A stretch of DNA of 64,000 nucleotides from Selaginella moellendorffii (Eukaryota; Plantae; Lycopodiophyta): the NCBI RefSeq assembly GCF_000143415.4, contig NW_003314383.1, positions 1 through 64,000 on the forward strand, in the 5' to 3' direction. The position numbers and the translations under genes were made by a program. Below the pieces are notes generated by a model. It searched no databases. It worked only from the letters and a program-made list of their open reading frames with translations, and was not told the origin of the DNA. Each line of letters starts with the position of its first letter. Position 1 is the stretch's first letter. Below, in pieces: positions 19,220 to 43,140 of the stretch.

Positions 19220-19860
19220 TGAATTGCACGCAAATGGAGAGGAATTTGTGACAATCAGAAGATCACAAATCAGAGACAAGAATGAGAAAACAAAAACCTT
19301 TGTTAGATTCTCAGTGACATATCAACATTGTGTTAGCATCTTGTTGTGTGGCAGTCTTGCATGTCATACCCCATACATGACATGTCTCATGGAAAAATTA
19401 TTATGCATACAATCACATTTTGATTGCTCATAATAATTTTGTGTGCAATCAAAAACAAAAAAAATCTGCAGATGAGTAAATAAAAAATGCACCTCCCCAT
19501 AGCCTTTCTGAGCAGAGTCAGATAATTCAATAAATCATTATTAACTAAAGATATACTTGTTTTCCTAGCAGATATTTAGGGAAAGACCATGTGTTTGAAT
19601 GTACATAATCATATTACCAAGTTATTAAGTTAAGCATATAAAGGACTTTCTTATTTGATAAATAATTGACTATGGCTTCTTCAAAATTTGCTTGAGTGGA
19701 GTTTTTTTATGTCAAGTTTAGTAAGAGAAATGGAGTTTGGCATTATTTTTAACGAATTAGATGCCAGTTTTAACAACATAGTCAATATAGGTCAAAGGTC
19801 ACATGAGGTATGAATTAGGGTTAAGGATACATAACCTACCCGAGAAGCTCACAGTAGTGG

Positions 19861-20060
19861 TAGAGCTTTTGAAGTAGGTCAAGGGTAGTTAGGTGGTGAG
19901 AACTTACATTGGCATATTAGAGCTTTTGAAGTAGGTCAAGGGTAGTTAGGCGGTGAGTCAAGAGGAGGTGTACCATTATTTAGTTGAGGCTAGGCAACAT
20001 GGTATGAAGCTCAAGCTTAGAATTATTTAGTTAAGGCTAGGCAATATAGTATGGAGCTCA
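19861..20060. repeat. Two short local tandem duplications
   Basis: agagcttttgaagtaggtcaagggtagttagg occurs twice, and attatttagtt(g/a)aggctaggcaa...gctcaa occurs twice. Confidence 0.8.
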
Positions 20061-20086
20061 AATTTAAACCTAAGTTAAATACACAG

Positions 20087-20232
20087 TGTAAGCTCATGAA
20101 TTTAGACTTTTCAGGAGGTCACTCAATCTAGTACTACTCAAACCCAAGGAGGTTTATCCCCAAATATCCCAAGATTCTTAACTGATTGGAAAACAGGGGT
20201 GTACAATTATTAATGAGCCCTTTCCTTGTATA
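20087..20232 (-). mobile_element. Truncated Cassandra-type LTR
   Basis: TGTAAGCTC start, colinear with the LTRs of 21012-21606 including the 5S-like core. Confidence 0.8.
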
Positions 20233-20257
20233 TCCACCAATTAAAAGTGTACTTGCT

Positions 20258-20562
20258 TGTGAGGCACAAATCTCTAAGCCCCAAAGTGGAGTTGAAAGTG
20301 TGCCATATGGCAGTGGTCGAAATGGAAGTCCAACAAGCATAACAAGTTGGGACCAAAAGCTCTGACCTAAAAAGTTGAGAGCGGGAGTGGAACTTCGAAT
20401 GAAGTGCTCAAGGAATAAGTATGAAGCTATTGATGAATAAATCTCTAGAAAGGGACACAAGAAGGATTGACACATGGCATGTGTTGTGACATATAGAAGT
20501 GTCTGGACCAAGTTCGAGAAGGACTCCGAGATGGAGCCTGAGGTTGAGTCCTAGATGGAGAC
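20258..20562 (+). mobile_element. Family D LTR fragment
   Basis: Begins TGTGAGGCACAAATC like the LTRs at 22987 and 28371. Confidence 0.7.
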
Positions 20563-21011
20563 TGTAAGGAGCCAACTCCCCAAGGTGTCATTGGCTAAAG
20601 GATCTCTAAAACCATAACCGAAACGATAAAGAATTTATCACATGAGACCTACTCTAAGATCGAGTCTGAGACCGAGTCTGAGACCAAGTTTGAGACCGAG
20701 TCCGAGACCAAGTTTGTGACCAAGTTCGAGACCAAGTTTGAGACCGAGTTTGAGATCCAAGGTCAAGTCTAAGATCGAGTTCAAGATCAAGTTCGAGACA
20801 GAGTCTGAATACTAATACAGGTCATGGGGTGAAAACCCAAAAAGATTGTCTTCTAGGAGGAAGGGGTTCAGGGGGTTTCAAAAGTATAGTAGGGATAGTG
20901 AGGTCAAGAAACTAGTTTCTCTAATAGTGCTTCCAAACTAATTTAAGGTTGGGACTGGGGGTGAGAGGCCTTGGGTGGGAGTGAGCACAAACTTAGGTGG
21001 TGCTAGAGAGG

Positions 21012-21606
21012 TGTAAGCTCCTGAGTTTCGACTTCCCGAAAATTCACCCAACCCAGTACTATTCAAACCCAAGGATGCTTGACACCCCAAATATCCTAAG
21101 ACCCTTAATTGATTGGAAAAGGGAGTACACTCTTGTTCATGGGCCCTTTCCCTTTATATTTGAACCCCTATATATCGTCTCTTGAGTCATTCCCTTTGGT
21201 TGTTTACAATTCACCATGCTTCCCTGCAAATTCACACTTCGTGAATGGAAGTTGAGAGCCACAGCTCTCCTGAGAGCCTCGCTCTCTTGACACCTTACCC
21301 CTCGGGTTGAGCCTAGCCGAAGCAAGTTGAACCTGCCAAATGTCAATCAACATGTGGTGTGATTCCCCTAGCCAACTAACAAAGTCGGACCCAAGACCTC
21401 TCTGATACCAAATGTAAATTTCTGAGCTTAGACTTTCCAGAAGGTCACCCAGCTTAGTACTATTTAAACTCAAGGATACTTAACCCCAAATATCCCAAGA
21501 CCCTTAACCAATTGGAAAGGGGGTGCATTCTTGTTCATGGGCTCTTTCTCTATATATTTGAACCCTTATGGATTGTCTCTTGAGCTGTTCCTTTTGGTTG
21601 CTTACA
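21012..21606 (-). mobile_element. Cassandra-type TRIM (older copy)
   Basis: LTRs 21012-21208 and 21413-21606 with 5S-like cores. Internal ~200 bp carries the reverse-complement PBS (CTCTGATACCA) and PPT. Colinear with 37121-37712. Confidence 0.9.
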
Positions 21607-24600
21607 CCTTGGCAATAGTTAAGTTCCTTTGCTACATTTCTGCCTATTTTACCAGCTCCTACTTAATTCTCCTTAAGCTATTCACTACATGAATAATAGA
21701 GTGTTAGCCATCTGTCCACGGATTCCCAAATTCTCTCCCAATCCCCCTCCTTGGGTTAGATTGTACTTAAGGTTTAATTACACTCCCTAAAGGCACAAGT
21801 AGCCAAGCACACTAAGCTTCTAGGTTCTTAACATCCCTTAGTACCACAAGACATGATCATAAGACACTCTAAATCATAAGTTTTAGGTGCATCTTTTGCT
21901 TCAAGACCCCAGAGGGAAACACTGTGGCAAAATGGCCTAGTAGAGGTACCCCTACTCCCCCACTTCTATCCCAAAGGGAAGGCCCAAGCCCCTAGGAAAG
22001 AGCAAGGACCAATGAGCCGTATGGTACTCAAATGAGGCACCAATCCACCTGAGCTAGGAGCACTGTAGTTGGTTTCCCCTTTGGGAGTGGGAGCTACACT
22101 TTCTTGGGTGGCCTCTTGTAAGTGATTAAATTTTCCATTCTACTTTAGTCACTTAACCACACCTTTGACCACTTAGAGGGGTCTCACTCACAACCTCCAT
22201 AAGTCCTATTCCAGACTTCAGGCGTGCTATCCCCGAGAATGGCATCCATGCCACTCAACCTTTGCATTTGGTCCAAGTGCTCTATGTATCCGATCTCATG
22301 ATCGACACGCAAAGGTACCATCAATATATTAGCCTATTATGCTAAGGCCATGCCCATTCACCTTTGTCACACTAGTGGTCCAAAACCAACTACATCACAA
22401 TCGTATCCCTCAAAGACTGAGCCCTTTGTCCATGAGTGATCATTCTAGATCCACTCCTTAACATCCTTAGGATGCCCGCAGACATGGGGAATAACTTTCC
22501 CCAATATCCCTTTTATGGTCCGCACCAAGTCCTTTTCTGTCCATAACTTTGTTCGCCAATACTGCCATTGGATCAAGGCCCACAGGCCCCACCACTAAGT
22601 CCCACTGTCTTCTGGGACTTTCTCACCATATGCTAGAGGACTGCTCCTCTTCCTTTTCACAATTTGGGACTTTAGGACAACATTTAGAAACACCATAACC
22701 CTACATGAGCCTCATGTGTACTCTCCCCACCTTTTGCCTTTGGGTGCTCTAGCCATGAGGCTAAAGTGAGGTTCCATTGAGCCACACTAGGCATCCAAGT
22801 AGGTAGTGCCACCCACACTTAGACTGGGAGCACTGACCATTCAATCTTCCAGGGGAACTAGAGCTGGCTTTAAACACTTCACCAAGCTACCCCACTTGTC
22901 GGTTCATATTCACTCTAGCCTTGGACTTCCCAATGGTTATATCATCATCCAACACTTAGGTATAGCCTTTCTGAGCCACATTGGCTTGTGAGACACAAAT
23001 CCCTAATCCCCAAAGTGGAGCCAAAAGAGTGCCACGTGGTAGTGGCTGAAGCAAAAGTGAAACAATCATAACATGTTTGGACTAAAAGCTCCAACTTGAA
23101 GAGTCGAGAGCGGGAGTGGAACTCCCGATGGAGTGCTCAAGGAATGAGCATGAAGTGAGCAATAAAAGAGTCTCTAGATAAGGGACACAAGAGGACCAAC
23201 ACATGACACGTGGTGGAGTCTGAGATGGGACCTGAGATGGACCTGAGATGGAGTTTGAGATGGAGTCCGAATGGAGTCAAAGATGGACACAAGATGGACC
23301 CAAGATGGAGTCCAAGATGGAGTCCGAGATGGACCTGAGATGGAGTCCGAGATGGACTGAGATGGAATCCGAGATGGAGTCGGAGATGGACCCGAGATGG
23401 AGTCTGACATGGACCGAGATGGAGTTTAAGATGGACCCGAGATGGAGTCCGAAATGGACTGAGATGGAGTTCGAGATGGAGTTTGAGAAGGACCTGAGAT
23501 GGAGTTTGAGGTCAAGACCAAGACCGAGACTAAGACAGAGACTGGGACTGAGATCAAGACCAAGGCCAAGGCCGAGCCCGAGTCCAACTCCGAGTCCAAG
23601 TCTGAGTCTGAGTCTGAGTCCGAGTCCGAGTTTGAGTTTGAGTCCGAGTCCGAGTCCGAGTTCGAGTCCAAGGGTGAAAGCCTAAAGCGTTCGTCTCCCA
23701 GACCCAGGGGGGTTTGGTGAGCTCCAAAAGTACAGTAGAGGGAGGACTCTAGTGGAGCCAGTTTGGCCAAGAAAGGCTAATTTGGCCCAAAAAGGCTGTA
23801 CCCAGGTGTTGGGTGATGGGATAACCACTGGGAAGTCCAAGGTTAGAGTGAATATGGACTGACAAGTGGGGTGGTTTGGTGAAGTGTTCAAGAATCGGCT
23901 CTAGTTCCCCTAGGAGATCGAATGGTCAATGCTCCCAGTCCAAGCATGGGTGGCACTACCTACTTGCATACCTAGCGTGGCTCAATTTGGTATCGAAGCT
24001 ATTCCTTAGTTTGACTTTTATTGGTGCTCAAGTATATCACCACTTGTATTGGCATTGAAAGGTCTGAGGAGTGGGCTTATCCTTGAGGAGTAGCAGGTCA
24101 GGAGGACATAGCTCTCGACTATAATTCATGTGTAAACTTGTAGGCAAGGTGGTAGATAGAAAAGGGACAATAAGGGAATGACTTTAGGATCTTGGGAATA
24201 GTATAAAGTTTTCCTTAAAGAGTTGAGGATGTGATCCAAATGAGTGTTTGATTCAGCAAACTGGCTAATGTAGTTGTGGTAAACAAGTATAGTTGGGATC
24301 ACGGGAAAGATAGAGACTCCAAAATAATAAAGGAGTCACAAAATTATCCTCATATAGTTGAGGTTAGTGCTCATGAATTTGAGACCAAAATTAATGACTG
24401 TGGGAAGTCAAATATGGAAAAGGACACAAGTCCTTGAAATGGTAGCCGGGCCTACCCTTAATAAATGCTAGAACAATTCAAGAGATTGGGGGTGTACTTA
24501 AAGGATGAGTTGGAATTCTCATCACATGGACAAATAATCCTAAGAGGCAAAAGTAACCCATATGGAACAAAGAATAATCAAGTGTCGGAATAACACTTGT

Positions 24601-27600
24601 AAGAATGGTCCTTATAGGTAGGACATGAATACAAGAAGTTGTATTCTAACAAGCTGGCACTTCAAAAATGAGACTTTTTAGGTCGTCGAATTAATGAAGT
24701 CCAAAAAGAATAATTCGAGTGGAGTCAAGGAATGGTCCTAGAGGACTAGTGGAAGCATTTGGATTGAGGTGTGTTATACCCCACGAAGGATGAGAAGGAT
24801 TATAAGATCCAAGTGTGAGAACAGTGGGTATCTCATTAATGGTAGAATGTGCTATACTAAAGTTATGAGAAAGGGGTTCCCAAAAGAAAGCAACTTTGAT
24901 ACAAAGTTGTGTGTAAATTACATAGTTCAGTGCTAACAGATAGTTGGCATGAGAAACAATTGTATTGGTCTTGGCAAAGACCTAGACACAAGTAAAAAGT
25001 GTCATAAAGGTAGGTTCGTGGAACTGATGGTGTGGAGACACCGAATGTGCCAAGGTGTGATGCCTTGAGGTTAAGTTGGTGAGTTCATGAGAACCCTTTC
25101 CCAAAGGAATCCTAATGAAAATGGGAATGGCATAGCTTAAGCTGGAAGGCATGCAGTTAGAGTGTGGTGACCCAAAATAATGATGGAGATAGGGAAGCAC
25201 TAGTAATAAGTTGTAGGACTTGACAACTATGAGGCAACTAAGCAAAAATGTGCAAAATAATTGATTAAACTGGTAGAAGGTAACTACCTAAGACTTTTTA
25301 TTGGGATAAAGAAGTTAAACATACCCTTATGGGGGATAAATTATTAATATTGCAATATAGTAGGTCAATATTATAAAGGGAATGTTCATTGCCAAAGAAG
25401 GCTATCATTGGGACATCTAAACACTCTAAAACACTAGGAAGTGGTGTTTGGTGTCGTGAGGGCATTAGATAAGGCCCAAGGGACTAAGTCCCTAGCGAAT
25501 GATGGATAGGAAGTGCAATCCAAACGTTCGAGGTTACAAAGATGGGAGAAGTCCGTCTACCCGAATTGGACAAAACCAAAAAGGGATTTTGGCAAGGTTA
25601 GTCATGGGCATATAAAAGCCCATAAGTAGCAATGTTAATCCCAATGTGTGGGAATATAAAGTGAGTATACCCGGATTAAAGAACCACTCTCTAGGCTATT
25701 AGGTAGGTTCATCTCTATGAATACTTGCTAAGGCATGTTGAAAGTGCAAAGCTATCCTTCTAGTCTGGAGGAGAATGACCGAAGAAAATGTATGAGGCCA
25801 AAAAGCAAGTAGTAAAGTGATAGAACTAAACTATAGGAATCAAAGGGTATAACCAAGGGTGGTTATGCAAGTTGGGAATGGAGAATCAAGTGGGGGCTCA
25901 AGCGGTTTATTATTAACAATCGTGATGCCATGGGGAGTCTAAATATGGAATTATCTATGTTAGACCATATGGTAATTAGAAAGCTTGTAAAAAGGAAAGG
26001 CCTTAATAAGCTAAGAAACAAAGTTCGTTGAAGGTTCCCAAAGGTTCCCAATTCTAGGTGGATAAGTACCTAGAAAGCCAAGTGTAAATGGTTTATAGAG
26101 TGTGTGAAATTAGAGTGGCACAAAAAAAGCGTGGTCTTGAAACTTGTCATGAGGCGAGGCTATCAAGGTTAGGGAAGTAGTTCCCAAGTGTTCAAAGAGA
26201 AGGCTTTGAATGAAAGTTAATGGTTAATGACTTTCACGCTTGTGCATGAACCATATTACAATGGTCGAATGACTTGCTAGGTGAGATTAGCAAGTCAGGG
26301 GAACAAATATCTTAGTTGAAGGTGCTAACTTCAAAAGGGGTGGCCCATAAGGCCAAGTATGGAGGAGTCCATACATGATCACAGACATATCAAGTGAAAG
26401 GACTTGGTAGTGCAGAGGAACTAGGTTCCTAAGCCGTGATCTGTAATACGCTTTAAGTATAAGTTGGTGCACCGGCATGGGGAGTCACGCTAAGCATCCT
26501 GTGTGATGCCATCCGTAAATGCATATACAGAGGTTGGGTTCAAGTCCCGACACTTTAGTGCTTGGGTTTGAGTCCCAACTCACTAGGGCGTAGTAATGGT
26601 TTGGAATATAAGGACACTCATTTTTCGGTGGTCATGGACTTTTAGTAAAGAGACTAGCTTGGGCACACTGCCAAGTGGGGGATGCCCCAGAGTCATGATG
26701 CACGGTTAGATTGTTTAGAGTGAAAGCCTGGCATATCTAACTTGAACACTTTGGTGCAAGTGGCACCTAGGATGTGGTGAATGAGATGGGGACACTCAAT
26801 CTTAGTTGCTATGGACCCTTGGCTAGAAAGGTTGGCTTGGGCATACTGCCAAGTGTGGGGGATGCCCCCAAGGTCATCGTTAACAACTTAAAGGTCTAGA
26901 AGACCTAGTACCTATTGGCTAACTTATTAAGGTGCCAAGATAAAATCACTAGGTGATCTTGTGGCTAAATAAAGATAAGGTCCTTATTTGGGTAAGGAAT
27001 AAGGTTCCTAGTTCAAAGTATTAATTTGAATTAATGATAATGGTGTGATTTGATCAAGGTGACCAAGTGTGAAGAACACTTAAGGGAAATGAGCTATGTC
27101 AATGCGATGGCCTAATGAGTTGGAGGGTCACAAAGTTGGGCCGTGGATGGAGCCCATACTAGAAAATGCTAAAAAGACCTACTAGGGGTGAGCACCCTCT
27201 GGACTTGGCAAAGTGAAGCTTTTGCCATGGAACCAAAAGAATACCTCAAGGATGGAGGTAGTGATCCTATATTGCTTGGTTCAACAATCAATGGATAAGA
27301 GCAAAAGACTAGTGGCTAAGAAGAGAGCTATGGGAATCATAGGACAGAACTCAAATGGCAAAGTTAAGCCAGGAACACTAATGTGTTCGATGCTAACAGA
27401 TTGTGGGAAGGCAATGTGTTTCCAATGATGGATTCCTAATTGCTCTGATTTGGTGAAGGTGGAAGCTCCAAGGGAGGGAGTGGCAAGGTAACCAAATGAT
27501 AAGGCTGTGAACAACCTTAGCACAACTTATGATAATTGGAACTTAGTGCCAAATGTGGCACGAAATAGGAGAGAGGGTGATGGTGCCTTTAAGTAAAGAT

Positions 27601-30254
27601 CTTCCTAGGATAGGGAAGTGGATTTTGCACAATACGTGCAATGCAAGGTGTCAGACACACCTAGGAAATTAACTTTGAGAAGTTAAAATTAAAAGTTCCA
27701 AAGTATGATGGTTATATTGATAAAAGTTGAGACTAATCAAGAATGAGTAGTGGGATTGAGATAAAGAAGGTATCTCTAATGGGTTGCTTCGATTTAGCGA
27801 AAATGGAAGTTCTAAGGGAGGGAGCAATAAAGTAGCCAAATGATAGGGCCGTGAACAACCCTAGCACAAACTATAATTATGGAATTAGAATTTAGTGTTA
27901 AAGGTGGCACAAAATAGAAAAGAGGACGATAGTGCCCTCAAGTAGAGAATTTCTTAGGATGGGAAAGTGGAGTTACACAAAATGTGCAATACAATGTGTT
28001 GGAGACACCTAGGAAATTGACTCTCAGAAGTCAAAATTAAAAGTTCTAAAGTGCAAAGGTTATATCAATGGGAATTGAGACTATTCAAGAATGAGTAGTG
28101 GGATTAAGATAGAGAAGGTGTCTCTAACAGGTTTAGCGAGAACTAAACCAATAAAAGGAGAGAACCACCACAAATGGTCGAATGAGTCTCTAAGTTGGAG
28201 AGATTATGCTCCTTAAAAAATGGACAAGGCATGATGAGCTTCTGGTGTCAAACCATTAACAAATATTGGCTAAATGCCAAGGATGGAAAGGGTAATACAT
28301 GCTAATATTACTTAATAAATTAGTTTATTGTTTGATGAGGACATCAAACTTTGTCTATGAGTGGTGGAGTTGTGAGACACAAATCCCTAAGCCCCAAAGT
28401 GGAGCCGAAAGGGTGCCACATGGTAGTGGCCGAAGCGAAAGCTAAACAAGTGTAACATGTTTGGACTAAAAGCTTCAACTTGAAAAGTCGAGAGCAGGAG
28501 TGAAACTCCTAACAAAGCGCTCCAGGAACAAGCATGAAGTGAGCAATAAGTGAGTCTTTAGAAAAAGAACACAAGAGGACCAACATATGACACGTGGAAG
28601 TGTCCAAGATGGACTTGAGATGGAGTCCAAGATGGACCCAAGATGGAGTCTAAGATGGAGTCCGAGATGGACCTGAGATGGAGTCCGAGATGGACCTGAG
28701 ATAGAGTCCGAGATGGAACCAAGACCAAGACCGAGACCGAGACTGAGACCGAGTGTGAGTCTGAGTCCGAATACGAATACAAGCTGTTGGGTGAAATCCC
28801 AAAGCGATCGTCCCCCTGGGGCAGGGGGGGGCTGCAGGGGGTTCCAAAAGTATAGTAGGGAGAGTGTGGGGGTTGGACCCTAGTGGAGCCAATTTGGCCA
28901 GAAATGGCCAGTTTGGCCCAAAAAGGCTATACCCAGTTGTTGGGTGATAAGATAACCACTTGGAAGTCCAAGGCTAGAGTGAATACGGACTAACAAGCAG
29001 GATAGCTTGATGAAGTGTTCAAGAGCAAGCTTTAGTTCCCCTAGGAGATCGAATGGTCGATGCTCCCAGTCCAAGCATGGGTGGCACTACCTACTTGGAT
29101 ACCTGGCGTGGCTTAATGGAACTTCACTCTAAGCCTATGGCTAGAGCACCCAAAGGAAGAAGGTGGGGAGAGTACCCAGGAGGCTCACATAGGGCCACGA
29201 TGTTTCGAAATGTCATCCCAAAGTCCCAGACTATGGAAAGAAAGAGGAGTGTGTAAGCGACTAATTTTTCCATTCTACTTTAGTCACTTAACCACACCTT
29301 CGACCACTTGGAGGAGTCTCACTCACAACCTCCTTAAGTCCAATTCAGGACTTGGACTTGCTAGCCCCAAGAATGGCATCCATGCCACTCAACACTTGCA
29401 CCTGGTCCAAGTGCTCCACGTGTCCGGTCCCAAGACCGACACCCAAAGGTACCACTGACATCTCGGCCCGTTACGCTAAGGCCATGCCCATTCACCTTTG
29501 CTGCACTAGTGGTCCAATACCACTTGCATCACCATCCCGTCTCTCCAAGACTGGGCCATCGGTCCACGAGTGGTCATCCTAGATCCACTCCTTAGCATCC
29601 TTAGGATGCCCACAGACCTGGGGAATCGCCTTCCCCAAAGTCCCTTTGTCAATTCCTACCAAGTCCCTTTTTGCCCCTGGCCGTGTTTGCCAACACTGCC
29701 ACTGGATCGAGGCCCATAGGCCCGACCACTAAGTCCCATGGTCCTCTGGGACTTCCTCACCACACGACTGTGTCCTTGGTCACTACCCCAGAGGACTGCT
29801 CCTCTTCCTTTCCACAGTCTAGGCCTTTGGGACAACATTTCGGAACACCGTGGCCTTACGCGAGCCACCTGGGTACTCTCCCCGCCTTTCGCCTTTAGGT
29901 GCTCTAGCCATGGGCTTAGAGCGAGGTTCCGTTGAGCCACACCTGGTATCCAAGTAGGTAGTGCCACCCACACTTGGACTGGGAGCATCGGCCAGTCGAT
30001 CTCCCGGGGGAACTAGAGCCGGCTCTTGAACACTTCACCAAGCTACCCCGCTTGTCGGTCCGTGTTCACTCTAGTCTTGGACTTCCCAGTGGGCAGCTCA
30101 TCACCCAACACTGGGTCCGGCCTTCCTGGGCCAAACTGGCCTTTCATGGCCAAACTGGCTCCACTGCAGTCCTCCCCCTACTATACTTTTGGGGCTCACC
30201 AAACCCCCCAGGGTCTGGGAGATGAACGCTTTGGGCTTTCACCCTCTCAGGCTC

Positions 30255-30890
30255 CGGACTCGGACTCGGACTCGGACTCGGACTCGGACTCGGACTCAGA
30301 CTCGGATTCGGACTCGGACTCGGGCTCAGGCTCGGTCTCGGCCTCGGCCTCGGTCTCGGTCTCGGTCCCGATCTCGGTCTCGGTCTCGGTCTCGGTCCCG
30401 GTCTCGGTCCCGGTCTCGGTCTCGACTTCGGACTCCATCTCGGACTCCATCTCGGACTCCATCTCGGGTCCATCTCGGACTCCATCTCGGACTCCATTTC
30501 GGGTCCATCTCGGGTCCACCTCGGACTCCATCTCGGACTCCATCTCGGACTCCATCTCGGACTCCACTTTGGACTCCAACTCGGGTCCATCTTGGGTCCA
30601 CCTCGGACTCCACTTCGGACTCCAACTCGGGTCCATCTCGGACTCCACTTCGGACTCCAACTCGAGTCCATCTCGGACTCCACTTCGGACTCCAACTCGA
30701 GTCCATCTCGGACTCCACTTCGGACTCCAACTCGAGTCCATCTCGGACTCCACTTCGGACTCCAACTCGAGTCCATCTCGGACTCCACTTCGGACTCCAA
30801 CTCGAGTCCATCTCGGACTCCACTTCGGACTCCAACTCGAGTCCATCTCGGACTCCACTTCGGACTCCAACTCGAGTCCATTTCGGACAC
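30255..30890. repeat. Hierarchical tandem array in the 3' LTR of B: GACTCG/GTCTCG hexamers, 12-mers and 35-mers
   Basis: Direct reading. The 35-mer GACTCCACTTCGGACTCCAACTCGAGTCCATCTCG recurs at 35-bp spacing (30641, 30676 ... 30851). Confidence 0.95.
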
Positions 30891-32334
30891 TCCCACGTGT
30901 CATGTGTTGGTCCTTTTGGGTCCCTTTTTGGAGCCTTGCCTTTTGCTCGCTTCGTGCTCGTTCCTTGAGCACTTCGTTGGGAGTTCCACTCCCGCTCTTG
31001 ACTTTTCAAGTCAGAGCTTTTGGTCCAAACGTGTTACGCTCGTTTAGCTCTCGCTTCGGCCACTACCATGTGGCGCCCTTCCGGCTCCACTTTGGGGCCT
31101 AGGGATTTTGTGTCTCACAACTCCACCACCCATAGATGAAGTTCGATGTCCTCATCGAACGGTAAACCATTTTGTAAAGTAACACTCGTATGTGTTACCA
31201 TTTCCATCCTTGGCACCTAGCCAATATTTGTCAATGGTTTGACATTGAAGGCTCACCATGCCTTTTGCATATGCCTCAATGGTTTGACACCAAAGGCTCA
31301 CCATGCCTTGCCTATCCTCTAAGGAGGGTAGTCTCCCCAACTTAGAGACTGATTGGACCACAAGGAGTGGTTCTCTCCTTTTATTGGTTTAGTTCTCGCT
31401 AAACCTCTTAGAGACCCTTCTCTAAGTCAATCCCACTACTCCTTCTCGAGTAGTCTCAATTTCCATCGATATTACCTTTGCACTTTGGAACTTTGAATTT
31501 TGACTTCTTGGAGTCAATTTCCTAGGTGTCTCCGACACCTTGCCTTGCACCTTTTGTGCAACTCCACTTCCCATCCTAGGAAGTTCTCTACTCGAGGGCA
31601 CCATCATCCTCTCTTCTATTTCGTGCCAAAGTTCCAGTTATCATACTTTGTGCTAGGGCTGTTCATGGCCCTATCATTTGGCTACCTTACCGCTCCCTCC
31701 CTTGGAGCTTCCACTTTCGCCAAATCGGAGCATTTCGGAATCCCTCCTAGGAAACACACTTCCTTTCCCACAACTTGTTAGCGTCCAACACATTAGTGTT
31801 CTTCGCCTAACTTTGTCACTTGGATTCCTTCCAAGGGATTCCACGGCCCTATCTTGGCCACTCATCTTTTGCTCCTATCCGTTGATTGTTGCACCAAGCA
31901 ACATCAAATCTCTACCTCCCTCCTTGAGGTATTGTTTCGGTTCCATAGCAAAGACTCTTCTTTGCCAAGTCCAGAGGATGTTCACCCCTAGTACGTCTCT
32001 TTAGCATCTTCTGCTATGGGCTCTATCCATGGCCCAACTTCGTGACCCTCCCATGGGTCTTTTATAGAGACTACTTTCCTCGGACTCACTATGCCATCGC
32101 ACGGACATAGTTTATTTCCCTTAGGTGCTCTTCCCACTTGGTTATCACGACCAAGCCACACCACCTTAAACAGTTCAATTTTAACATTTTCAACCAGAAA
32201 CTTCATTCCTTAGCCAACCAAGGACCTTGTCCTTATCTGGCCATAAGATCACCTAGTGATCTCACCTTGGCACCTTAATAGAGTTGCCAAGAGGTACTTG
32301 GTTTTCTAGACCTCCAAGTTGTTGACTATAACCC

Positions 32335-32790
32335 CGGAGGCATCCCCCACACTTGGCGGTGCACCCAAGCTAGCCCTTACGGCCAAGGGTTCATAGCAAC
32401 TGAGATTAGGTGTCCCCATCTCACTCACCACGACCTTGGTGCCACTTGCACCAAAGTGTTCAAGTTAGATATGCTGAGCTTTCACACTAAGCAATCTAAC
32501 CGTGCATCACGACTCCGAGGCATCCCTCGCTTGGCGGTGTGCCCAAACCAGTCTCCCCACTGAGAGTCCATGACCACCGAAATATGAGTGTCCTCATATT
32601 CCAAACCATCACCACGCCCTAGTGATTTGGGACTCGAACCCAAGCACTAGAGGGTCGGGACTCGAACCCAACCTCCGTATATGCATCTACGGACGGCATC
32701 ACACTAGATGCCTGGCGTGACTCCCCACACCGGTGCACCAACCTATTTTTAAAGCGCGCTACAAATCACAGCTTAGGAACCTAGTTCCTC
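32335..32790 (-). other. Putative structured RNA domain with two tRNA T-arm/B-box motifs inside element B
   Basis: The minus strand carries adjacent hairpins, including GGTTGGG-TTCGAGT-CCCGACC and TTGGG-TTCGAGT-CCCAA, plus a duplicated ~110 nt multi-hairpin unit. A homologue lies at ~26420-26870 in A. Confidence 0.55.
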
Positions 32791-35700
32791 CACACTGCCA
32801 AGTCCTCTCACTTGACATGTCTGTGATCATGCATGGACTCCTCCATGCTCGGCCCCATGGCCCACCCTTTTTGAAGTTATCACCTTCAACTAGGGTCTTT
32901 GTTCCCCCGACGTGCCAATCTCACTTGGCAAGTCCTCCGACCATTGTAACATGGTTCCTGCATAAGCGTGAAAGTCCTTGACCATCGACTTTCGTTCAAA
33001 GCCCTCTCTTTGAACACTCGGGAACTACTTCCCTAACCTTGATAACTTTGCCTCATGGCAAGCTTCAAGACCACGCTTCTGCTGCGCCACTCTGATTTCG
33101 CGCGTTCCATGAACCATTTACACTTGGCCTTTCTAGGTACTACGCTACCTAGAATCGTCTTTGGGAACCTTGAAGGAACTCTGTCCCTCAGCTTGTTAAG
33201 GCCTCCCCTTTCGCAAGCTTTATAGTTGCCATATAGTCTAACATGGACAATTCCATATTTTAGACTCTCCATGGCATCACAGTTGCTAGCAACAACATCC
33301 TCGAGCACCCTCTTGATTCTCCACTCCCAACTTTCATAACCACTGTTGGATATGCCCTTTGATTTCTATGGTTCAATTCCATCCCAATACTACTTGCTTT
33401 TGGCTTCACACCTTTCCTTTGGTCATTCTCCTCCAGACCAGGAGGATAGCTTTGCACTTTCTATCATGCTTTAGCAAGTATTCTTAGGGATGGACCTACC
33501 CAATAGCCTAGGGAGTGGTTCCTCAATCCGGGTATGCTCACCTTATAATCCCACACACTGGGATTACATTGTTGCTTATGGGCCGTTACATGCCCATCAC
33601 TAGCCTTGCCAAAATTCCATTTTTGGCTTTGTCCAATTCGGGTAGACAGTCCTCTCCTGCCTCCGCAACCTTGGACATTTGGATAGCACCTTCTATCCAT
33701 CGTTCGCTAGGGACTTAGTCCCTTGGGCTTTATCCATTGCCCTCGCAACATCAAACACCACCTTCTGGTGTTCTAGAGTGTCCGGATGTCCCAATGATGG
33801 CTTTCTTGACAATGAGTATTTCTTTTTATGACATTGACTTACTATATCGCAACACAAGCAACTTATCCCCCGTAAGGGTATATCCAACTTCCTTATGCTA
33901 TTAAGAAGTCTTGGGTAGCTACCTTCTACCCGTTTAACCAGTTATTTTGCACCTCTTGCTTAGTTGCCTCGTAGTTGTCAAGTCCTACAACTCATTGCTT
34001 GGTGCTTTCACACCTCCATCATTATCTGGGTCACCACACTCCAACTGCATGCTCTGCAGCTTAGGCTATGCTATTCCCATTTCCATTGGGATTCCTTTGG
34101 CAAGGGGTTCTCATGAACCCACCAACATAGCCTCAAGGTATCACACCTTGGCACATTTGGTGTCTCCACACCATCGGCTCCACGAGCCTACCTCTATGAC
34201 ATTTCCCCTTCGTGTCTAAGTCTTTGCCAAGACCAACACCGCTCTTTCTCATGCCAACCATCCGTTAGCACTGCACCATAGAGGTCACACACAACTTTAT
34301 GTCAGAGTTGTTTTCTTCTGGGAACACCTTTCCCATAACTTTAGCATGGCATATTTTGCCATTGATGAGATACCCTCTGTTCTCATCCTTGGATCCTATG
34401 ATCCCCCCCCCATCCTTTGTGGGGTACAACACACATCAGTCCAAATGCTTCTATCAGTCCTTTTAGGACCATCCGCTGACTCTACTTGAGTCATCCAGCA
34501 ATTTTGGACTTGGTTAATCCACAGACCCGTAAGGTCCTACTTGTGAGGCACTAGCTCACTGGAATACACTTCTTGCATTCCTGTCCTACTCAAAAGGACT
34601 ATTTTCACAAGTGTTACTCCGACACTTGATTTTGTTCTCTGGGGGCAACCTTTGCCCCTTAGGACTACTTGTCCATGTGATGAGAATACCAACTCATCCA
34701 CTCAATACACCCCCAACTCCTTGGGTTGTTCCAGCATTTATTAGAGGTAGCCCCGGCTACCATTTCAAGGATTTGAGTCCTCTTCCGTATTTGACCTTCC
34801 ACGGTCATTACCTTTGGTCTCACATTCATGAGCACCAACCTCAACTATATGAGGATAATCTTGTGACTCCTTTATTGTTTTGGAGTCTCTATCTTTCCCG
34901 TGATCCCAACTTTAGTTGTTTACCACAACAACCTTAGCCAATTTGCTGAGACAAATGCTCATCCGGATCACATCCTCAACTCAATGAGGAAAACCTTGCA
35001 CTGTTCCCAAGATCCCAAAGTCGTTCCATTATTGGCCCTTTTCTATCCACCACTCGTCTACAAGTTCACACATGAACTGTAATGGAGAGCCATGTCTTCC
35101 CGACTTGCTACTCCTCAAGGATAGACCCACTCCTTGGACCTTCCGATGCCAACACTAGTGGTGATATACTTGAGCACCAATAAAAGTCGGACTAAGGAAC
35201 AGCTCTGATACCAAATTGTAAGTGACTAATTTTTCCATTCTACTTTAGTCACTTAACCACACCTTCGACCACTTGGAGGAGTCTCACTCACAACCTCCTT
35301 AAGTCCAATTCAGGACTTGGACTTGCTTGGCGAGGGAACTTAGCACAAGCCAAGACGGAGTTGGTCGGATAGGCGAGGTAAGCTGGCAAATTGGAAAGGA
35401 AAAATTTGTGGCTAACACAAAGGTACCACTGACATCTCGGCCCATTACGCTAAGGCCATGCCCATTCACCTTTGCTGCACTAGTGGTCCAATACCACTTG
35501 CATCACCATCCCGTCTCTCCAAAACTGGGCCATCGGTCCACGAGTGGTCATCCTAGATCCACTCCTTAGCATCCTTAGGATGCCCACAGACCTGGGGAAT
35601 CGCCTTCCCCAAAGTCCCTTTGTCAATTCCTACCAAGTCCCTTTTTGCCCCTGGCCGTGTTTGCCAACACTGCCACTGGATCGAGGCCCATAGGCCCGAC

Positions 35701-36229
35701 CACTAAGTCCCATGGTCCTCTGGGACTTCCTCACCACACGACTGTGTCCTTGGTCACTACCCCAGAGGACTGCTCCTCTTCCTTTCCACAGTCTAGGCCT
35801 TTGGGACAACATTTCGGAACACCGTGGCCTTACGCGAGCCACCTGGGTACTCTCCCCGCCTTTCGCCTTTAGGTGCTCTAGCCATGGGCTTAGAGCGAGG
35901 TTCCGTTGAGCCACACCTGGTATCCAAGTAGGTAGTGCCACCCACACTTGGACTGGGAGCATCGGCCAGTCGATCTCCCGGGGGAACTAGAGCCGGCTCT
36001 TGAACACTTCACCAAGCTACCCCGCTTGTCGGTCCGTGTTCACTCTAGTCTTGGACTTCCCAGTGGGCAGCTCATCACCCAACACTGGGTCCGGCCTTCC
36101 TGGGCCAAACTGGCCTTTCCTGGCCAAACTGGCTCCACTGCAGTCCTCCCCCTACTATACTTTTGGGGCTCACCAAACCCCCCAGGGTCTGGGAGACGAA
36201 CGCTTTGGGCTTTCACCCTCTCAGGCTCC

Positions 36230-36740
36230 GGACTCGGACTCGGACTCGGACTCGGACTCGGACTCAGACTCGGATTCGGACTCGGACTCGGGCTCAGGCT
36301 CGGTCTCGGCCTCGGCCTCGGTCTCGGTCTCGGTCCCGATCTCGGTCTTGGTCCCGGTCTCGGTCCCGGTCTCGGTCTCGACTTCGGACTCCATCTCGGA
36401 CTCCATCTCGGACTCCATCTCGGGTCCATCTCGGACTCCATCTCGGACTCCATTTCGGGTCCATCTCGGGTCCACCTCGGACTCCATCTCGGACTCCATC
36501 TCGGACTCCATCTCGGACTCCACTTCGGACTCCAACTCGGGTCCATCTCGGGTCCACCTCGGACTCCACTTCGGATTCCAACTCGGGTCCATCTCGGACT
36601 CCACTTCGGACTCCAACTCGAGTCCATCTCGGACTCCACTTCGGACTCCAACTCGAGTCCATCTCGGACTCCACTTCGGACTCCAACTCGAGTCCATCTC
36701 GGACTCCACTTCGGACTCCAACTCGAGTCCATTTCGGACA
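36230..36740. repeat. Same tandem array in the 5' LTR of B, shorter
   Basis: Same units, roughly three fewer 35-mers. Confidence 0.95.
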
Positions 36741-37120
36741 CTCCCACGTGTCATGTGTTGGTCCTTTTGGGTCCCTTTTTGGAGCCTTGCCTTTTGCTCG
36801 CTTCGTGCTCGTTCCTCGAGCACTTCGTTGGGAGTTCCACTCCCGCTCTTGACTTTTCAAGTCGGAGCTTTTGGTCCAAACGTGTTACGCTCGTTTGGCT
36901 CTCGCTTCGGCCACTATCATGTGGCGCCCTTCCGGCTCCACTTTGGGGCCTAGGGATTTTGTGTCTCACAGAGTGTAGTGACCAAGGATATGGTCATGTG
37001 GTGATGAAGTCCTAGAGGACAATGGGACTTAGTGGTCAAGCCTATAGGTGTTGTCCCAGTGGCAGTGTTGGCGAACATGGCCATGGATAGAAAAGGGACT
37101 TGGTGGGGACTGTAAAAAGG

Positions 37121-37712
37121 TGTAAGCAACCAAAGGGAACGACTTGAGAGACGGTCCATGGGGTTCAAATATAGAGGGAAAGGGCCCATGAATAAGAGTG
37201 CACCCCCTTTTCCAATCGGTTAAGGGTCTTGGGATAGTTGGAGTTAAGCGTCCTTGGGTTTGAATAGTACTGGGCTGGGTGACCTCCCGGGAAGTCCAAA
37301 CTTAGGAGCTTACATTTGGTATCAGAGGGGTCTCGGGTCCGACTCTGTTGGTTGGCTAGGGGAATCGCACCATATGTTAATTGACATCTGGCTGGTCCAG
37401 TTTGCTCCGCTGGGCTCGACCCGAGGGGTAGGGTGTCAAGAGAGCGGGGCTCTTGGGAGAGTTGCGGCTCTCAGCTTCTGTTCACGAGGGCATGAACTTG
37501 CAGGGAAGCGTGGTGGATTGTAAGCAACCAAAGGGAACGACTTGAGAGACGGTCCATGGGGTTCAAATATAGAGGGAAAGGGCCCATGAATAAGAGTGCA
37601 CCCCCTTTTCCAATCGGTTAAGGGTCTTGGGATAGTTGGAGTTAAGCGTCCTTAGGTTTGAATAGTACTGGGCTGGGTGACCTCCCGGGAAGTCCAAACT
37701 TAGGAGCTTACA
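37121..37712 (+). mobile_element. Cassandra-type TRIM, intact and very young
   Basis: 194-bp LTRs 37121-37314 and 37519-37712 with one visible mismatch; PBS TGGTATCAGAG; PPT AGGGAAGCGTGGTGGA; perfect TSD AAAGG. Each LTR carries a 5S rRNA-like segment. Confidence 0.95.
37241..37297 (+). promoter_or_regulatory. 5S rRNA-derived Pol III internal control region in the Cassandra LTR (second copy ~37639-37695)
   Basis: GAGTTAAGCGtccTTGGGtttGAaTAGTACTgGGcTGGGTGACCTCCcGGGAAGTCC matches the A-box to C-box part of plant 5S rRNA as I recall it. Confidence 0.9.
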
Positions 37713-39214
37713 AAAGGATATTGGGGATGGTTGTTCCCCATATCTGTGGGCATCTTAAGGATGTTAAGGAGTGGATCTAGGATGGTCACTCCTAGATGGA
37801 TGGCCTAGTCTTTGAGAGACAGGACTGTGATGCAAGTGTTGTTAGACCACCAATGTGACCAAGGTGAATGAGTATGGCATTAGCGTAACGGGCTGGTATA
37901 TCGGTGGTACCTTGGGGATTGGACATGTGGAGCACTTGGACCAAGTGCAAAGGTTGAGTGGCATGGATGCTATTCTTGGGGATAGCAAACCCGAAGTCTA
38001 AAATAGGATTTATAGAGGTTGTGAATGAGACTCCTCCAAGTGGTTGGAGTGGTTAAATGACTAAAGTAGAATGGAAAAATTGGTCTCTTACAGCGCCCCC
38101 CCCCCCTCCCCTCTGGGGGACGATCACTTTGGGCTTTCACCTAATAGCATGTATTAGTATTCGTACTCGAACTCGCACTTGGACTTGGTCTCGGTCTCGG
38201 TTTTGGACTCAGACTCGGTCTCAGTCTTAGTCTCAATTCCATCTCGGACTCCATCTCGAGTCCATCTCGGGTCCATCTCAGACACCATCTCAGATCCATC
38301 TCGAACTCCATCTTGGGTCCATCTCGGGCTCCATCTCGGGTCTATCTCGGACTCCACTTTTGGGGCCTAGGGATTTTGTGTCTCACACAAGGTAGTGGTG
38401 ATCAAATAGACAAGGTAAGCTAGCAAATTGGAAAAGAAAAATTTATGGCTTACATTGTGTTGCCAAACTGCTGTAAGTAAAAATTTTAGTTGAGAAAAAC
38501 CTCATATGAAATATGCTTAGTGGCTTTTCCATGAGCACTTTTCATGTTTGTTGTGTCACTAACCTTAGTTTGGAAACAAATAAAAGAGAGAAAAACTACT
38601 AAGCATATAAGAACTTCATAAACTGGAAGGATCAAACAGATTGTAATAAGGTCCTTTCTTCTAAGCTTTGTATATCTTAGATTGTTTTAACTTTCAAATA
38701 TCTTGTCATATTTAGTTTTCTTTCTTCTTGACAACCCGAATCAATCATTATCAATAACATTTTTAGAGCTTTCTCGCAGTCACAGCTCTGAGTGTAAACA
38801 TGTATGATAGTGTTCCATTACATGATGAATTGTGATTATTATTTCTTGGCTCCAGCTTCTCCCTCCAACCAGTGGTTGGTGGCACTGGAAAATCATTTTT
38901 ATTTAATACAATTATAATGCATCTGAAAAATACAGGGGAAAAAACTGTGGCAGTGACATGGACTGAAAGTAAGTACACTTTTAATTGGTGGACATACAAC
39001 TTTTAAATTACCAGTTCCTATTACTGAAACAAGTACATTTGACATATGTGGAAATGAAACTGAGAGGAATAAGATCTTTCTGATAACTTTTTGCACGTAA
39101 TCTAATGGTTCACACTCACCATATAACTATAGTTTTAAGCTTGTGATTATTCATGAATGTAATAAAAATTATCACCAAATAAATAATCTATTATTCTTTC
39201 AGTATACTAACTAC

Positions 39215-39240
39215 CCCAGTGGAGCTGGGATCCCATCTAG
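39215..39240 (+). mobile_element. Helitron 3' terminus
   Basis: Hairpin CCCAGT-GGA-GCTGGG, 7-nt spacer, CTAG followed by T. Confidence 0.75.
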
Positions 39241-39599
39241 TACTCCCTTTACTAGATCTGCTATTTGCATTTAGCATCTATGTGTCATATTCCTTTTTTA
39301 GAATATTATTTACTTAATTGGACGGTTACTATTTGATTACTTTCAAACAACTGCCTAAATTAAAACACGTGGCAAAAGGGTTGAAACGTTTCCTTAGACG
39401 TTTAAAATTTTTAGGGCGAGCCCGATTCAATTCTCAGTCACCTGGTTTATTCTCCTTTTCAGTGCCAAAAGAAACAACCAAGCTGGGCTCGGACGAGACT
39501 TTTGACCAATGCTTTTGGCTATCGCAACTTGTGCTGGTATGTAAGCAAATCTGCAAATCGTTTCCTATCTTTTGTGACATTCATGCATCTCTTTGGCCT

Positions 39600-42466
39600 T
39601 GATGTTGGTACTCCCTGTCCTATTCAAGAGTGGCATAGGCTACAAGTTATGTGAGATTTGCAAATCCTTTCTCAAGAGAATTCATATTCTTCTTCTTTGG
39701 CTTTGATTGCAGTAACTACATTTATGAGTTTCTTGCTTTGGATCATCACCACGAAATTAGAGGAGTGCCTCGGCACTTTATGGTCACTGTCTAGCAGCCA
39801 GCCTGCTGCGTCCTTCAAGTACGTTAATGAAGCTATGAATTCATGGACATCTATTTTTCTCTAGCAGTGGCTGTTTAAGCTCTTCCAGTTTTTGAACAAG
39901 ATGCCCACCAGCAACCAAAAGCTCCAAAGATATCAAGAGCATTGGATTGGAAGTGAATCTCATGAGTCTGGCAACACAAAGCTGTCTCGGAAGTATGTCC
40001 TTCATATCTTTTCTTTTTTTATCCTTCTCTCTGTTCATTTTGTGGTTTTGTCCTTGACACAGTTAATGTTCTTTAAGCCTGGCAAGTTGAGCATGGGATT
40101 GATCATGCACTATTACAAGCTTGCTTAAATCTCCAATTTGTAAACTTCAATGACTTGGTTTTTCCAGATTGGGAAGTTTTACCAGAGTGCATAGATTAAG
40201 CTTTAAGCTTGAGAGGGGTGGACAAGCTTTTTTGAAAGTCTCGAGAGCCCAGCCAGAGTGACTTAGATTGTGTCATTGCAGGCAAATTTAGGACAAAAGG
40301 ACTTTGTGTCCTCGCTCATTGCCCGAGCTCCAGGTTAGCGAGAGAAATTTCACTAAAACTGCTTACTAGATGCTCCTAATCTATTTACATAATTAATGGC
40401 ACCAAAGAAAATGCCCTGCCTAGGGTTGGCAATGGCCAGAAATGAATCATAGTTAAGTGGCATCACATCAGCAATCTTTCAAAGTTCTCCAAGGCTTACT
40501 TTCTTAATGCTGGAAGTGTACAAAATATTCACTTCATTCTTTGAGTTGCTTGAAGTTGCCATGAGGCCTCCAATTAAGGCCAATGCAACATGAGCTTTTA
40601 TGGAGAAAAGCTTTAGGACTTTGCCCGAGCTCCAGGTTAGNNNNNNNNNNNNNNNNNNNNNNNNNNNNNNNNNNNNNNNNNNNNNNNNNNNNNNNNNNNN
40701 NNNNNNNNNNNNNNNNNNNNNNNNNNNNNNNNNNNNNNNNGGTTGGCAATGGTCCAGAAATGAATCATAGTTAAGTGGCATCACATCAGCAATCTTTCAA
40801 AGTTCTCCAAGGCTTAACTTCTTAATGCTGGAAGTGTACAAAACATTCACTTCATTCTTTGAGTTGCTTGAAGTTGCCATGAGGCCTCCAACTAAGGCCA
40901 ATGCAACATGAGCTTTTACGGAGATTCGGTATAAGTGAAAATCCGTGATTCCTATCACTATGGATTTCCTCTTTTGTGCCATATGTAACAGGTGGTAAAG
41001 AAAGGATAGAAGCCACCAAAGTCTTTGGCAAAGACCGGACTGGCAAAACTCAACTAAGCCATACGGAGCTAATGGTAAAGTGGCTTTAGCTCCTGGAGCC
41101 AGAAGGTAGGTTTTGGATTTCCAAACTGGACATACATGCATGAGCATCGATACAACCTTTTGATTGGTAGCAGCTGAAATGAAGGCTCGCCACTCATCCA
41201 GGATTTCATCCTTGCGCAAAAATTTATTCTCGGATGTGCACTAACACCCTCGACTCTGCACAAGAACTGGTGTGGGAGAATGTCCACCAAACAGAGCTCT
41301 TGCTTTCTTGGTAAGAATTAACTATCTTTTATTCAGTCTAACAAGGAACTCATTACCGCCTTGTTTGGAGTAGACTTCTTTGGGCGTGGAGAATTTAATA
41401 TGGACAATGCCAGAGGCCTTTTCTTTGCACGGTACAGACTTTGACTTAAACACCAGAATACGAAAAAGTTCAAAGACATCAAAGGCTGTGATGAGGCCAG
41501 GGGGGGAAATAGTTGAGTTCAGCAAGTAAGGTCGACAAGATCCTGTAAGCAGTAAGAAGCAGAAAAAAAGGCTGCAATATCGTAACTAACACTGGAATTA
41601 TCTTTTTGCTCATTGTCAGTTTCCAGCAACAAGTCGGGCTGTATTACTAGGAATGAGATCCTTCCAGTTGAAGGCGTGAAGAACTTACGAGCTCTTATGC
41701 ATTGCATCTTGCTGATGAAAGAAGAAGCCACTTTCGATGTTGTTATGGTTTTCTGAAAAGGATTGGTTTTGTTCATGGAAAATGTGGGAATGGCACCACC
41801 GCAGCACTGGGAGCTCCACTTGGTGCTGGATTTGGAGTCGACCTGGCGATTGTCGTGGGAGCATCTGCAGCACTTGGCAAACCATAAAGGATTTGACGAA
41901 CAAACAATAAACACTCTTTGTTATTTGAAAGTCACCAATCGTTGGTTTATAAACAAGGTTACATGATATTTCTCGCTCTATTTGATTGTGAGCAGATGTG
42001 GAGGCTCCAGTGCCAATCCGGTAAGCAATTGAATCGACATCGAGTGAATGCCAATATATTGAGAATTGTGGCAATATGCAGTGAAAATATGATCACAGTG
42101 GCAGATGTCTCTGGGGAGAAGACCTTCGCATCAAGTAAATTTTGCTCGATCCTTGTGTCTAGATGAGGTAGAGACCCCACATTTTTGGATATTTTGCCCT
42201 AATTTTTATTGCGTGTGTAGAAAATCAGTTGACTATGGTGAGGGTTTTTCTGGCTATAGCCCGTGCACAAACCTCTTCATTTGGACGTGGTTAGTAAGTC
42301 CTTTTTCTTTCTGATGTTTCTTCAGTAGCTCTTTTGTGAACTTTGCACAGGAATATTTGAATGATAGGATGCATCTCCAAAGGATAAAGTATGCACTAAA
42401 ACCAGAACAGGCATTTGACTTATATATTCCTGGACAATGTTTTGGTATGTATGATTTAGTTTCCAT
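39600..42466 (-). pseudogene. Long decayed coding-like region of unknown family
   Basis: Successive minus-strand protein-like frames (42254-42466, 41685-42074, 40797-41219) are broken by stops and frameshifts, with no obvious introns. Spans an assembly gap. Confidence 0.35.
40641..40740. other. Assembly gap of 100 N (others at 56146-56245, 58987-59086, 62108-62207)
   Basis: Direct reading. Confidence 1.
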
Positions 42467-43140
42467 TTTCTAACATTATTTTTCTGTATATGCTTAGTTA
42501 TATGTTAATAAATTAGGCAATTGTATGTAGTGGATATATATATATATAACACAGTTATAAAGTTAAATTATTTTTAAACTTCTAAAAAATTAATTAATAT
42601 TAAAATTCTATACAAGAGGAAAATTAAGAAAAATAATTGCATAGTGATTATATTTACTCAAGAGATGAAGGCTTAAAGATGAAGTTGGAGTAAAGGTATT
42701 TAAGAGAGTTTAGATAGAAACTTTAAAAGTTACCAAAATTATGTGAATTGTGGTTTAGGAGAAACCACCTTCTCTTAAATTGTATATGAGAAAAGAGTAT
42801 GTAATTAATTTGATACTATAATATTAAAATTACAGATATATGGTAAACCTAATAAAAACCATGCTTTAAAGTAAAAGTAAACAAAGTAGTTACTATAGAA
42901 AATGACATATTTCATAACTTAAAATAGAAGAGTAAAATAGCTCTAACTATTTTGTTTTGTAAATTACTTTTATTTAATTAATAAATTTATATTAATACAT
43001 AATCTAGTGATAAATAATATTTCAAAAGAAGAATATGTGACACCTGATGCTTTTATTTCGACTAATGTTTTAAGTTAGGGTCTGGTTTAAAACATTCTTT
43101 TTCCTTTACACGCAAATGAAACTTCATATCTATTTAGGTC

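Follow-up and report, generated by a model that had tools for sequence, protein, structure and literature searches.

Here, we describe a retroelement nest in the lycophyte Selaginella moellendorffii, in which an exactly inverted segment of a host long terminal repeat (LTR) lies between the tips of two unrelated retroelements and in which each target-site duplication (TSD) is split between these two elements. The nest lies in the 64,000-nucleotide stretch of DNA that we analysed as a whole (hereafter, the window; contig NW_003314383.1, positions 1 to 64,000 of the forward strand). The host at this locus is a solo LTR of a family that we refer to as E, which occupies 20563-38454 including the nested material; the two elements are Cass1, a complete Cassandra element of the TRIM type (miniature retrotransposons with terminal repeats), and D0, a solo LTR of the D family. 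The parts follow each other in the order E forward, AGAGG, Cass1, CCTTG, E inverted, CCTCT, D, CAAGG, and end of E, with s1 and s2 denoting the two target sites in E:

20563-21006, plus strand: 5' piece of the E-family LTR, placed by alignment to 9361-10315, with the true LTR start TGTAAGG at 20563
21007-21011, plus strand: target site s1, copy 1, AGAGG, abutting the U5 end of Cass1
21012-21606, minus strand: Cass1, complete Cassandra TRIM of 595 bp, with the plus-strand ends TGTAAG...CTTACA
21607-21611, minus strand: CCTTG, target site s2 in reverse complement, next to the U3 tip of Cass1
21612-22111, minus strand: middle of the E LTR, 500 bp, inverted, 78% identical to the reference copy at 9361-10315
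22112-22116, minus strand: CCTCT, copy 2 of target site s1 in reverse complement, next to the U5 tip of D0
22117-22986, minus strand: left part of D0, comprising the final ~870 bp of a D-family LTR on its U5 side, with the plus-strand tip TGTAAG
22987-38092, plus strand: D1, a non-coding D-family LTR element nested in D0
38093-38387, minus strand: right part of D0, comprising the initial ~295 bp of the same LTR on its U3 side, with the plus-strand tip CTCACA
38388-38392, plus strand: target site s2, copy 2, CAAGG, abutting the U3 end of D0
38393-38454, plus strand: last 62 bp of the E-family LTR, ending in CTTACA

The uninterrupted target can be read from an intact E-family solo LTR at 9361-10315 (plus strand), which contains the s1 and s2 sites once each and is flanked by a TSD that matches at four of five positions (ATCAA/ATCAC). 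This copy is an independent solo LTR with a TSD of its own and not the second LTR of the element to which the host LTR belongs. In a self-comparison of the window, 9730-10253 in this reference matches 22116-21607 on the minus strand. The first-pass annotation of the window had proposed to align 20563-22116 and 38388-38454 to 9361-10315, and this alignment gave two exact overlaps: exactly five columns are covered by both the 5' piece and the inverted middle (AGAGG, which is AGGGG in the reference and occurs there once), and exactly five by both the middle and the 3' piece (CAAGG, also present once in the reference). The s2-type site is single as well in a third E-type fragment, a patch at 35328-35418. 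Because each overlap corresponds to a single five-column site in the uninterrupted E, we conclude that both 5-mers are TSDs, each of which is split between two elements. The chance expectation for two reciprocal 5-mer matches is ~1e-6, even before counting that they fall in homologous target columns.

Around Cass1, the flanking 5-mers are AGAGG and CCTTG, and around D0 they are CCTCT and CAAGG; the copies pair across elements and not around the same element. At all four junctions (21011/21012, 21606/21607, 22116/22117, and 38387/38388), an element tip (5'-TG...CA-3') abuts a 5-bp TSD copy. Cass1 and D0 are both in minus orientation, with the two U5 tips (21012 and 22117) at copies of s1 and the two U3 tips (21606 and 38387) at copies of s2. 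The polarity of the junctions fits strand transfer by an integrase, the CA-3' of the element being joined to the target beside the 5-bp copy. Consistently, the TSD length of these families is 5 bp, as seen in D2 (GAGTG/GAGTG) and Cass2 (AAAGG/AAAGG), two further insertions in the nest, and in the reference E. The inverted unit, consisting of s1, the middle, and s2, is 510 bp long and extends exactly from the Cassandra tip to the tip of the unrelated, non-coding D LTR. Altogether, the locus has crossed TSDs and an exact inversion that is bounded, to the base, by two element termini. The base-level description in the first-pass annotation, which ran from E to AGAGG through the Cassandra at 21012-21606, CCTTG, reversed E, CCTCT, and D to CAAGG and E, is thus borne out by the sequence, and so is its claim that each TSD is common to two different elements.

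Three E copies (20563, 9361, and 10694) begin at the identical base, and E is therefore a genuine separate LTR unit. An E start at 20258 was considered, as 20258-20562 is homologous to the starts of D LTRs, and was rejected because the three E copies begin at TGTAAGG; 20258-20562 is a separate D-like LTR fragment that adjoins the E start. A tandem-repeat block and the stretch following it are common to the E and D LTRs. The flanks of the host E LTR do not match (GAGAC at 20558-20562 and TTGTG at 38455-38459), and its left neighbour is the truncated D-like LTR, with nothing D-like following its right end.

The first-pass annotation had read 22117-38387 as one element, an LTR of type D. This does not hold: D0 is a solo LTR in minus orientation that is split by a 15-kb nest. 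The alignment of its left part to the D2 and D1 LTR ends begins at the first base, and both ends of D0 match the termini of other D-family LTRs. The possibility that the left and right ends derive from different elements was rejected because they are complementary parts of one LTR in LTR coordinates. However, the junction with D1 lacks ~32-58 bp of this LTR, and no TSD can be recognised around D1. Elements of the D family have LTRs of 1.4-1.9 kb and interiors of 4.1-4.4 kb with a primer-binding site and a polypurine tract. The longest open frame in these interiors is 110 aa, even in the young D2, and a Pfam search with eight D-interior frames gave no matches. Because the interiors have neither an open frame above 110 aa nor a Pfam match, we regard D as a non-autonomous family that resembles large retrotransposon derivatives (LARDs). 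The elements nested in D0, and the parts of Cass1, are as follows:

22987-23984, plus strand: 5' LTR of D1
23988, plus strand: primer-binding site of D1
28371-29251 plus 36976-38092, plus strand: 3' LTR of D1, interrupted by D2 and Cass2
29252-36970, minus strand: D2, inserted in the 3' LTR of D1, with the perfect TSD GAGTG
37121-37712, plus strand: Cass2, the second Cassandra, inserted in the 3' LTR of D1, with the perfect TSD AAAGG
21012-21208 (plus-strand coordinates, element on the minus strand): true 3' LTR of Cass1
21413-21606 (plus-strand coordinates, element on the minus strand): true 5' LTR of Cass1
21399-21410, minus strand: primer-binding site of Cass1

Cass1 (595 bp) and Cass2 (592 bp) are 85% identical end to end, and their termini match base for base. 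With LTRs of 194-197 bp, the ends TGTAAG...CTTACA, and an initiator-tRNA primer site after the 5' LTR, both have the architecture of TRIMs, i.e., a length of less than 1 kb, two short TG...CA LTRs, and an interior that does not code for protein but contains a primer-binding site and a polypurine tract. TRIMs in S. moellendorffii have been reported previously (PMC4717578). Cassandra is characterised by a segment derived from 5S rRNA in each LTR. At gathering thresholds, Rfam gave no matches across the window, and a 5S-like segment was seen only in a permissive scan. In that scan, the 5S_rRNA model matched the Cass2 LTRs with 32.4 and 31.1 bits (E 0.003-0.006) and, weakly, one Cass1 LTR with 22.8 bits (21416-21503), all under the gathering score, which is 38; these matches lack 34 positions of the model, and the 3' half of 5S is clearly recognisable. 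All four Cassandra copies of the window sit inside or beside D/E-type LTRs. The other two are a truncated LTR remnant at 20087-20225 (minus strand), 32 bp from the D-like fragment, and a solo LTR remnant at 10979-11163 (minus strand), which has non-matching flanks (ACAAA/CATAG) and lies 2 bp from the edge of another repeat.

Based on these observations, we suggest, at roughly even odds, that a retroelement integrase produced the four junctions together, during a single coupled, cross-paired integration of a Cassandra complementary DNA (cDNA) and a D cDNA. According to this model, two linear cDNAs, that of the 595-bp Cassandra TRIM and that of a D-family non-coding, LARD-like element, would have been present together with their ends paired crosswise, such that both U5 ends were directed into s1 (AGAGG) and both U3 ends into s2 (CAAGG), which lie 505 bp apart in the E-family solo LTR, each insertion proceeding with the usual 5-bp staggered cut. 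With M for the E middle, X and Y for the outer parts, and rc for the reverse complement, X-s1-M-s2-Y would have become X-s1-[Cass]-rc(s2)-rc(M)-rc(s1)-[D]-s2-Y, in which 500 bp are turned round and the two copies of either duplication lie at different elements. Afterwards, D would have collapsed to a solo LTR, and the insertions of D1, D2, and Cass2 would have followed. In a variant within the same episode, two normal integrations may have exchanged their still-unrepaired junctions.

The product predicted by the cross-paired topology has the observed order and orientation of every part, and the 595-bp Cassandra cDNA, as the tether between the complexes, would have a contour length sufficient to span the 505 bp between the sites. 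Cross-paired integration is also the most economical mechanism, with one event compared with the three that a later inversion needs. From these data, we infer simultaneity, cross-pairing of the ends, and a common integrase or particle. That the locus is a natural fossil of hetero-paired integration, in which both cDNAs were in one particle or pre-integration complex and were inserted by one integrase at two sites ~500 bp apart, we consider a little short of an even chance. The shared particle, which the first-pass annotation took to be implied by co-integration, is a step that we likewise only infer.

The initiator-tRNA primer site is common to Cassandra and D, as is the 3'-terminal CTTACA. 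Over ~40 nt before the 3' LTR, beside the polypurine tract, the Cassandra-D alignment score is 24 compared with 12.8 +/- 2.1 for shuffles, and none of 2000 shuffles reaches 24. In the stretch after the primer site, the likeness is weak, the score being reached in 127 of 2000 shuffles. The tips of Cass1 and D0 have only a 6-bp inverted identity, and the ungapped identity of the terminal 50 bp is 17/50. Because both families are non-coding, Cassandra and D must borrow proteins; according to Kojima (2024, PMC10886601), nothing indicates which family mobilises Cassandra. Based on the Kimura two-parameter (K2P) distance between LTRs, the values are 0.226 +/- 0.042 for Cass1, 0.165-0.214 for D1 (for which the three pieces of the 3' LTR were set end to end for the computation), 0.038 for D2, and 0.005 for Cass2. 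D1 is nested in D0 and therefore gives a minimum age of D0, and by the same measure Cass1 is not younger than D1. Because D0 is older than D1 and Cass1 is not younger than D1, these distances allow that Cass1 and D0 may have entered simultaneously.

The alternatives that we weighed (ALTERNATIVES) are homologous recombination, a later inversion, a staggered-break inversion, and an assembly error. The first-pass annotation had offered two origins, co-integration through mixed ends and a later inversion at the 6-bp microhomology; an integrase-made event is favoured by the evidence, and we keep the later inversion as the main rival, to which we give a clearly lower probability. It proposes that Cassandra at s1 and D at s2 were ordinary minus-orientation insertions and that the 510 bp between them were then flipped at the facing tips, perhaps by end-joining that used the 6-bp inverted match CTTACA/TGTAAG, by template switching, or by an integrase-related enzyme that cleaves the tips. 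The end product would be identical to the observed sequence, the 6-bp inverted match is present at both facing tips, and other microhomology events are found in the nest (a CAAT deletion at the D1 LTR/primer-site boundary and an AG deletion of 18.4 kb in a second copy of the locus, both described below). However, both breakpoints must hit two element termini to the base, and neither junction shows filler, lost bases, or added bases. Moreover, we counted 515 equal 6-bp inverted pairs (300-1000 bp apart) in 20258-23000 and 73,588 in the whole nest; because hundreds of equally good pairs lie nearby, an untargeted microhomology inversion at both tips is unlikely, and microhomology by itself does not explain why these two tips would have been used. 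To our knowledge, no enzyme cuts the tips of integrated LTR retrotransposons, and this counts against enzymatic cleavage as the source of a later inversion. Integrase-related cut-and-paste transposases do occur in lycophytes (GingerRoot, PMC6839031) and are a distant candidate for such a role.

Ectopic homologous recombination between inverted copies of one family, from which chimeric LTR elements classically arise, has a known signature of mismatched, reciprocally matching TSDs (maize CEN10, PMC4806543), and an oppositely oriented second Cassandra is available at 37121-37712. Here, however, the elements at the breakpoints are from different families with only the 6-bp tip in common, Cass1 and D0 align with their own families to the last base and are not chimeric, and the TSD of Cass2 is perfect; this explanation is therefore excluded for the observed structure and, in our assessment, effectively refuted. 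An exchange between Cass1 and Cass2 was rejected because of the perfect Cass2 TSD and because undoing such an exchange does not restore E. A misorientation of the 510-bp segment between two repeats during assembly is improbable. It could be envisaged in a draft window with four 100-N gaps, one of which (40641-40740) probably has an unmerged overlap; however, no gap lies within 2 kb of any junction, the flanking repeats are 75-85% identical to other copies in the window and hence too diverged to mislead an assembler, and the error would have to break exactly at both tips and retain both 5-bp copies. Exact-product look-ups of two open reading frames (ORFs) that span the Cass1 junctions matched no other assembly, and no ORF runs across the junction between the E middle and D0. 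We give very little weight to an integrase-independent, staggered-break inversion of the E segment with full-length linear cDNAs end-joined into both breakpoints. Inversions with short inverted duplications are a known signature of such breaks (reviewed in PMC12368964), and the E-type patch of ~86 bp in one D2 LTR indicates that cDNA ends can be captured in this lineage; against this, two breaks would each need the exact 5-nt stagger typical of these integrases, and two complete cDNAs would have to be joined at four places with no terminal base lost. We therefore favour an integrase-made event, based on the canonical junctions at four of four positions, an inverted identity of only 6 bp, the ~515 rival 6-bp pairs, the common cis signals, and the compatible dating.

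Several points weigh against a single cross-paired integration. The locus is a single one and ~20% diverged, with no allele in an intermediate state preserved; U5/U5 and U3/U3 pairing is required; the dating errors are wide, and the age of D0 is only a lower bound; two normal insertions followed by an exact flip would yield the identical final structure; and this structure comes from a single draft assembly. The literature searched contained no precedent in vivo for LTR elements that integrated with mixed ends, an absence that is weak evidence. Finally, the only other copy of the locus, which we refer to as L001, lacks window 20462-38865. L001 is S. moellendorffii scaffold GL377679.1:450064-472419, in which window 11582-20461 and 38868-44649 recur colinearly with 93-97% identity; based on this sequence comparison, the window and L001 are probably either different haplotypes or a recent duplication. 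At 16014-16021, L001 jumps from window 20461 to 38866 at an AG microhomology, and this 18.4-kb deletion takes out the whole E/Cassandra/D nest. Because the whole nest is lost, L001 says nothing on the inversion; it is the copy to which the 875-aa open frame described below led when we looked for a non-inverted allele, as the first-pass annotation had suggested. The window and L001 have diverged by ~5%, and the old elements of the nest predate that split.

Crossed duplications between two different LTR elements were not described in the literature searched, in which we found close analogues only. Among these, two-donor concerted integration by retroviral integrase in vitro is similar in that intasomes are built on two separate DNA molecules. 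In such assays, like ends can pair. It differs in that it is a test-tube reaction with identical oligonucleotide donors, and we found no description of a chromosomal product in the literature searched. In the alternative (hybrid-end or reversed-end) transposition of Ac/Ds and the P element, the ends of two copies are synapsed and inserted together, and inversions or deletions arise with one reverse-complement TSD copy per breakpoint (PMC8225341, PMC1592236). However, these are cut-and-paste DNA transposons with ends that are already chromosomal, whereas here free cDNA ends of two unrelated retroelements, two sites, and two TSD pairs would be involved. In autointegration of LTR elements and retroviruses, the integrase joins cDNA ends to nearby DNA and inverts or deletes what lies between (Arabidopsis SISYPHUS and Ty1, PMC7197481); there, the element's own cDNA is the target and the product is a dead-end circle, in contrast to a chromosomal target and two cDNAs here. 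Chimeric LTR retrotransposons made by inter-element homologous recombination likewise have two different flanking 5-mers that pair with those of another element (PMC4806543), but their partners are homologous and the products chimeric, while the partners here are non-homologous and intact to their tips. Staggered-break inversions place an inverted segment between short inverted duplications (PMC12368964); in that model, the duplications are variable in length and abut one another, whereas both have a length of exactly 5 bp here, with a complete retroelement between the two copies of each.

If cross-paired integration is correct, crossed TSDs would be a marker, readable from genomes, that shows which LTR elements, non-autonomous as well as autonomous, are carried along together. 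If such TSDs record one event with two cDNAs, they would provide a purely genomic assay for co-mobilisation, with relevance to the autonomous partner of Cassandra and to its packaging. Small exact inversions would then come directly from integrase and so, by symmetry, would small deletions between TSDs that do not match, and there would be an integrase-made route to elements with "mismatched" TSDs, which are now by default credited to homologous recombination. If a later flip occurred instead, LTR tips would be preferred breakpoints, which is likewise not an established fact.

Within the nest, several smaller rearrangements can be traced. The 5' LTR of D1 is without its last ~689 bp (seen at window 23776-23990 and 22776-22986), and the deletion joins GGCTCAAT to the primer-binding site via a CAAT microhomology and thus stops no more than 3 bp from the LTR tip. 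What this LTR lacks is matched by the inverted left arm of D0, a 210-bp inverted repeat being left around 22987-23775, and the arrangement looks like a partial collapse of a long inverted repeat. In D2, only the 5' LTR has ~75 bp replaced by the ~86-bp patch at 35328-35418, which corresponds to the last 86 bp of an E-type LTR and stops exactly at the tip of that LTR (CTAACA); it looks like a cDNA end captured during repair. The tandem arrays of the D LTRs are variable, with units of ~12 bp and ~35 bp (GAGATGGAGYC type; 30150-30900, 36150-36750, and 23210-23600), and give rise to long spurious ORFs on both strands and to sub-threshold Rfam matches to MIR2933. At 27440-28133, the D1 interior contains a ~345-bp tandem duplication (79% identical) that is not present in D2.

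Around the nest, the two copies of a 33-bp inverted repeat (94% identical; 20226-20258 and 38967-38999) enclose the D-like fragment together with the E nest and 512 bp of unique sequence. The end of the left copy coincides exactly with the point where the D-like LTR fragment starts, and L001 has the repeat too. The repeat could represent terminal repeats like those of miniature inverted-repeat transposable elements or the trace of another rearrangement. L001 has, in addition, an insertion of ~790 bp (13789-14579) that is not in the window at ~19028. The only long ORF of the window lies at 15264-17891 (plus strand) and encodes 875 aa with 95% identity to the hypothetical protein SELMODRAFT_429460 (725 aa); it has no Pfam domain, and a search of 5.8 billion proteins gave this one relative only. 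On the other side of the nest, 40424-40606 and 40741-40924 form a 97% identical direct repeat that straddles the 100-N gap at 40641-40740. Because L001 has this sequence once, the repeat is probably an unmerged assembly overlap. Beyond it, near 42-44.6 kb, lies a predicted flanking gene for a CH-domain protein.

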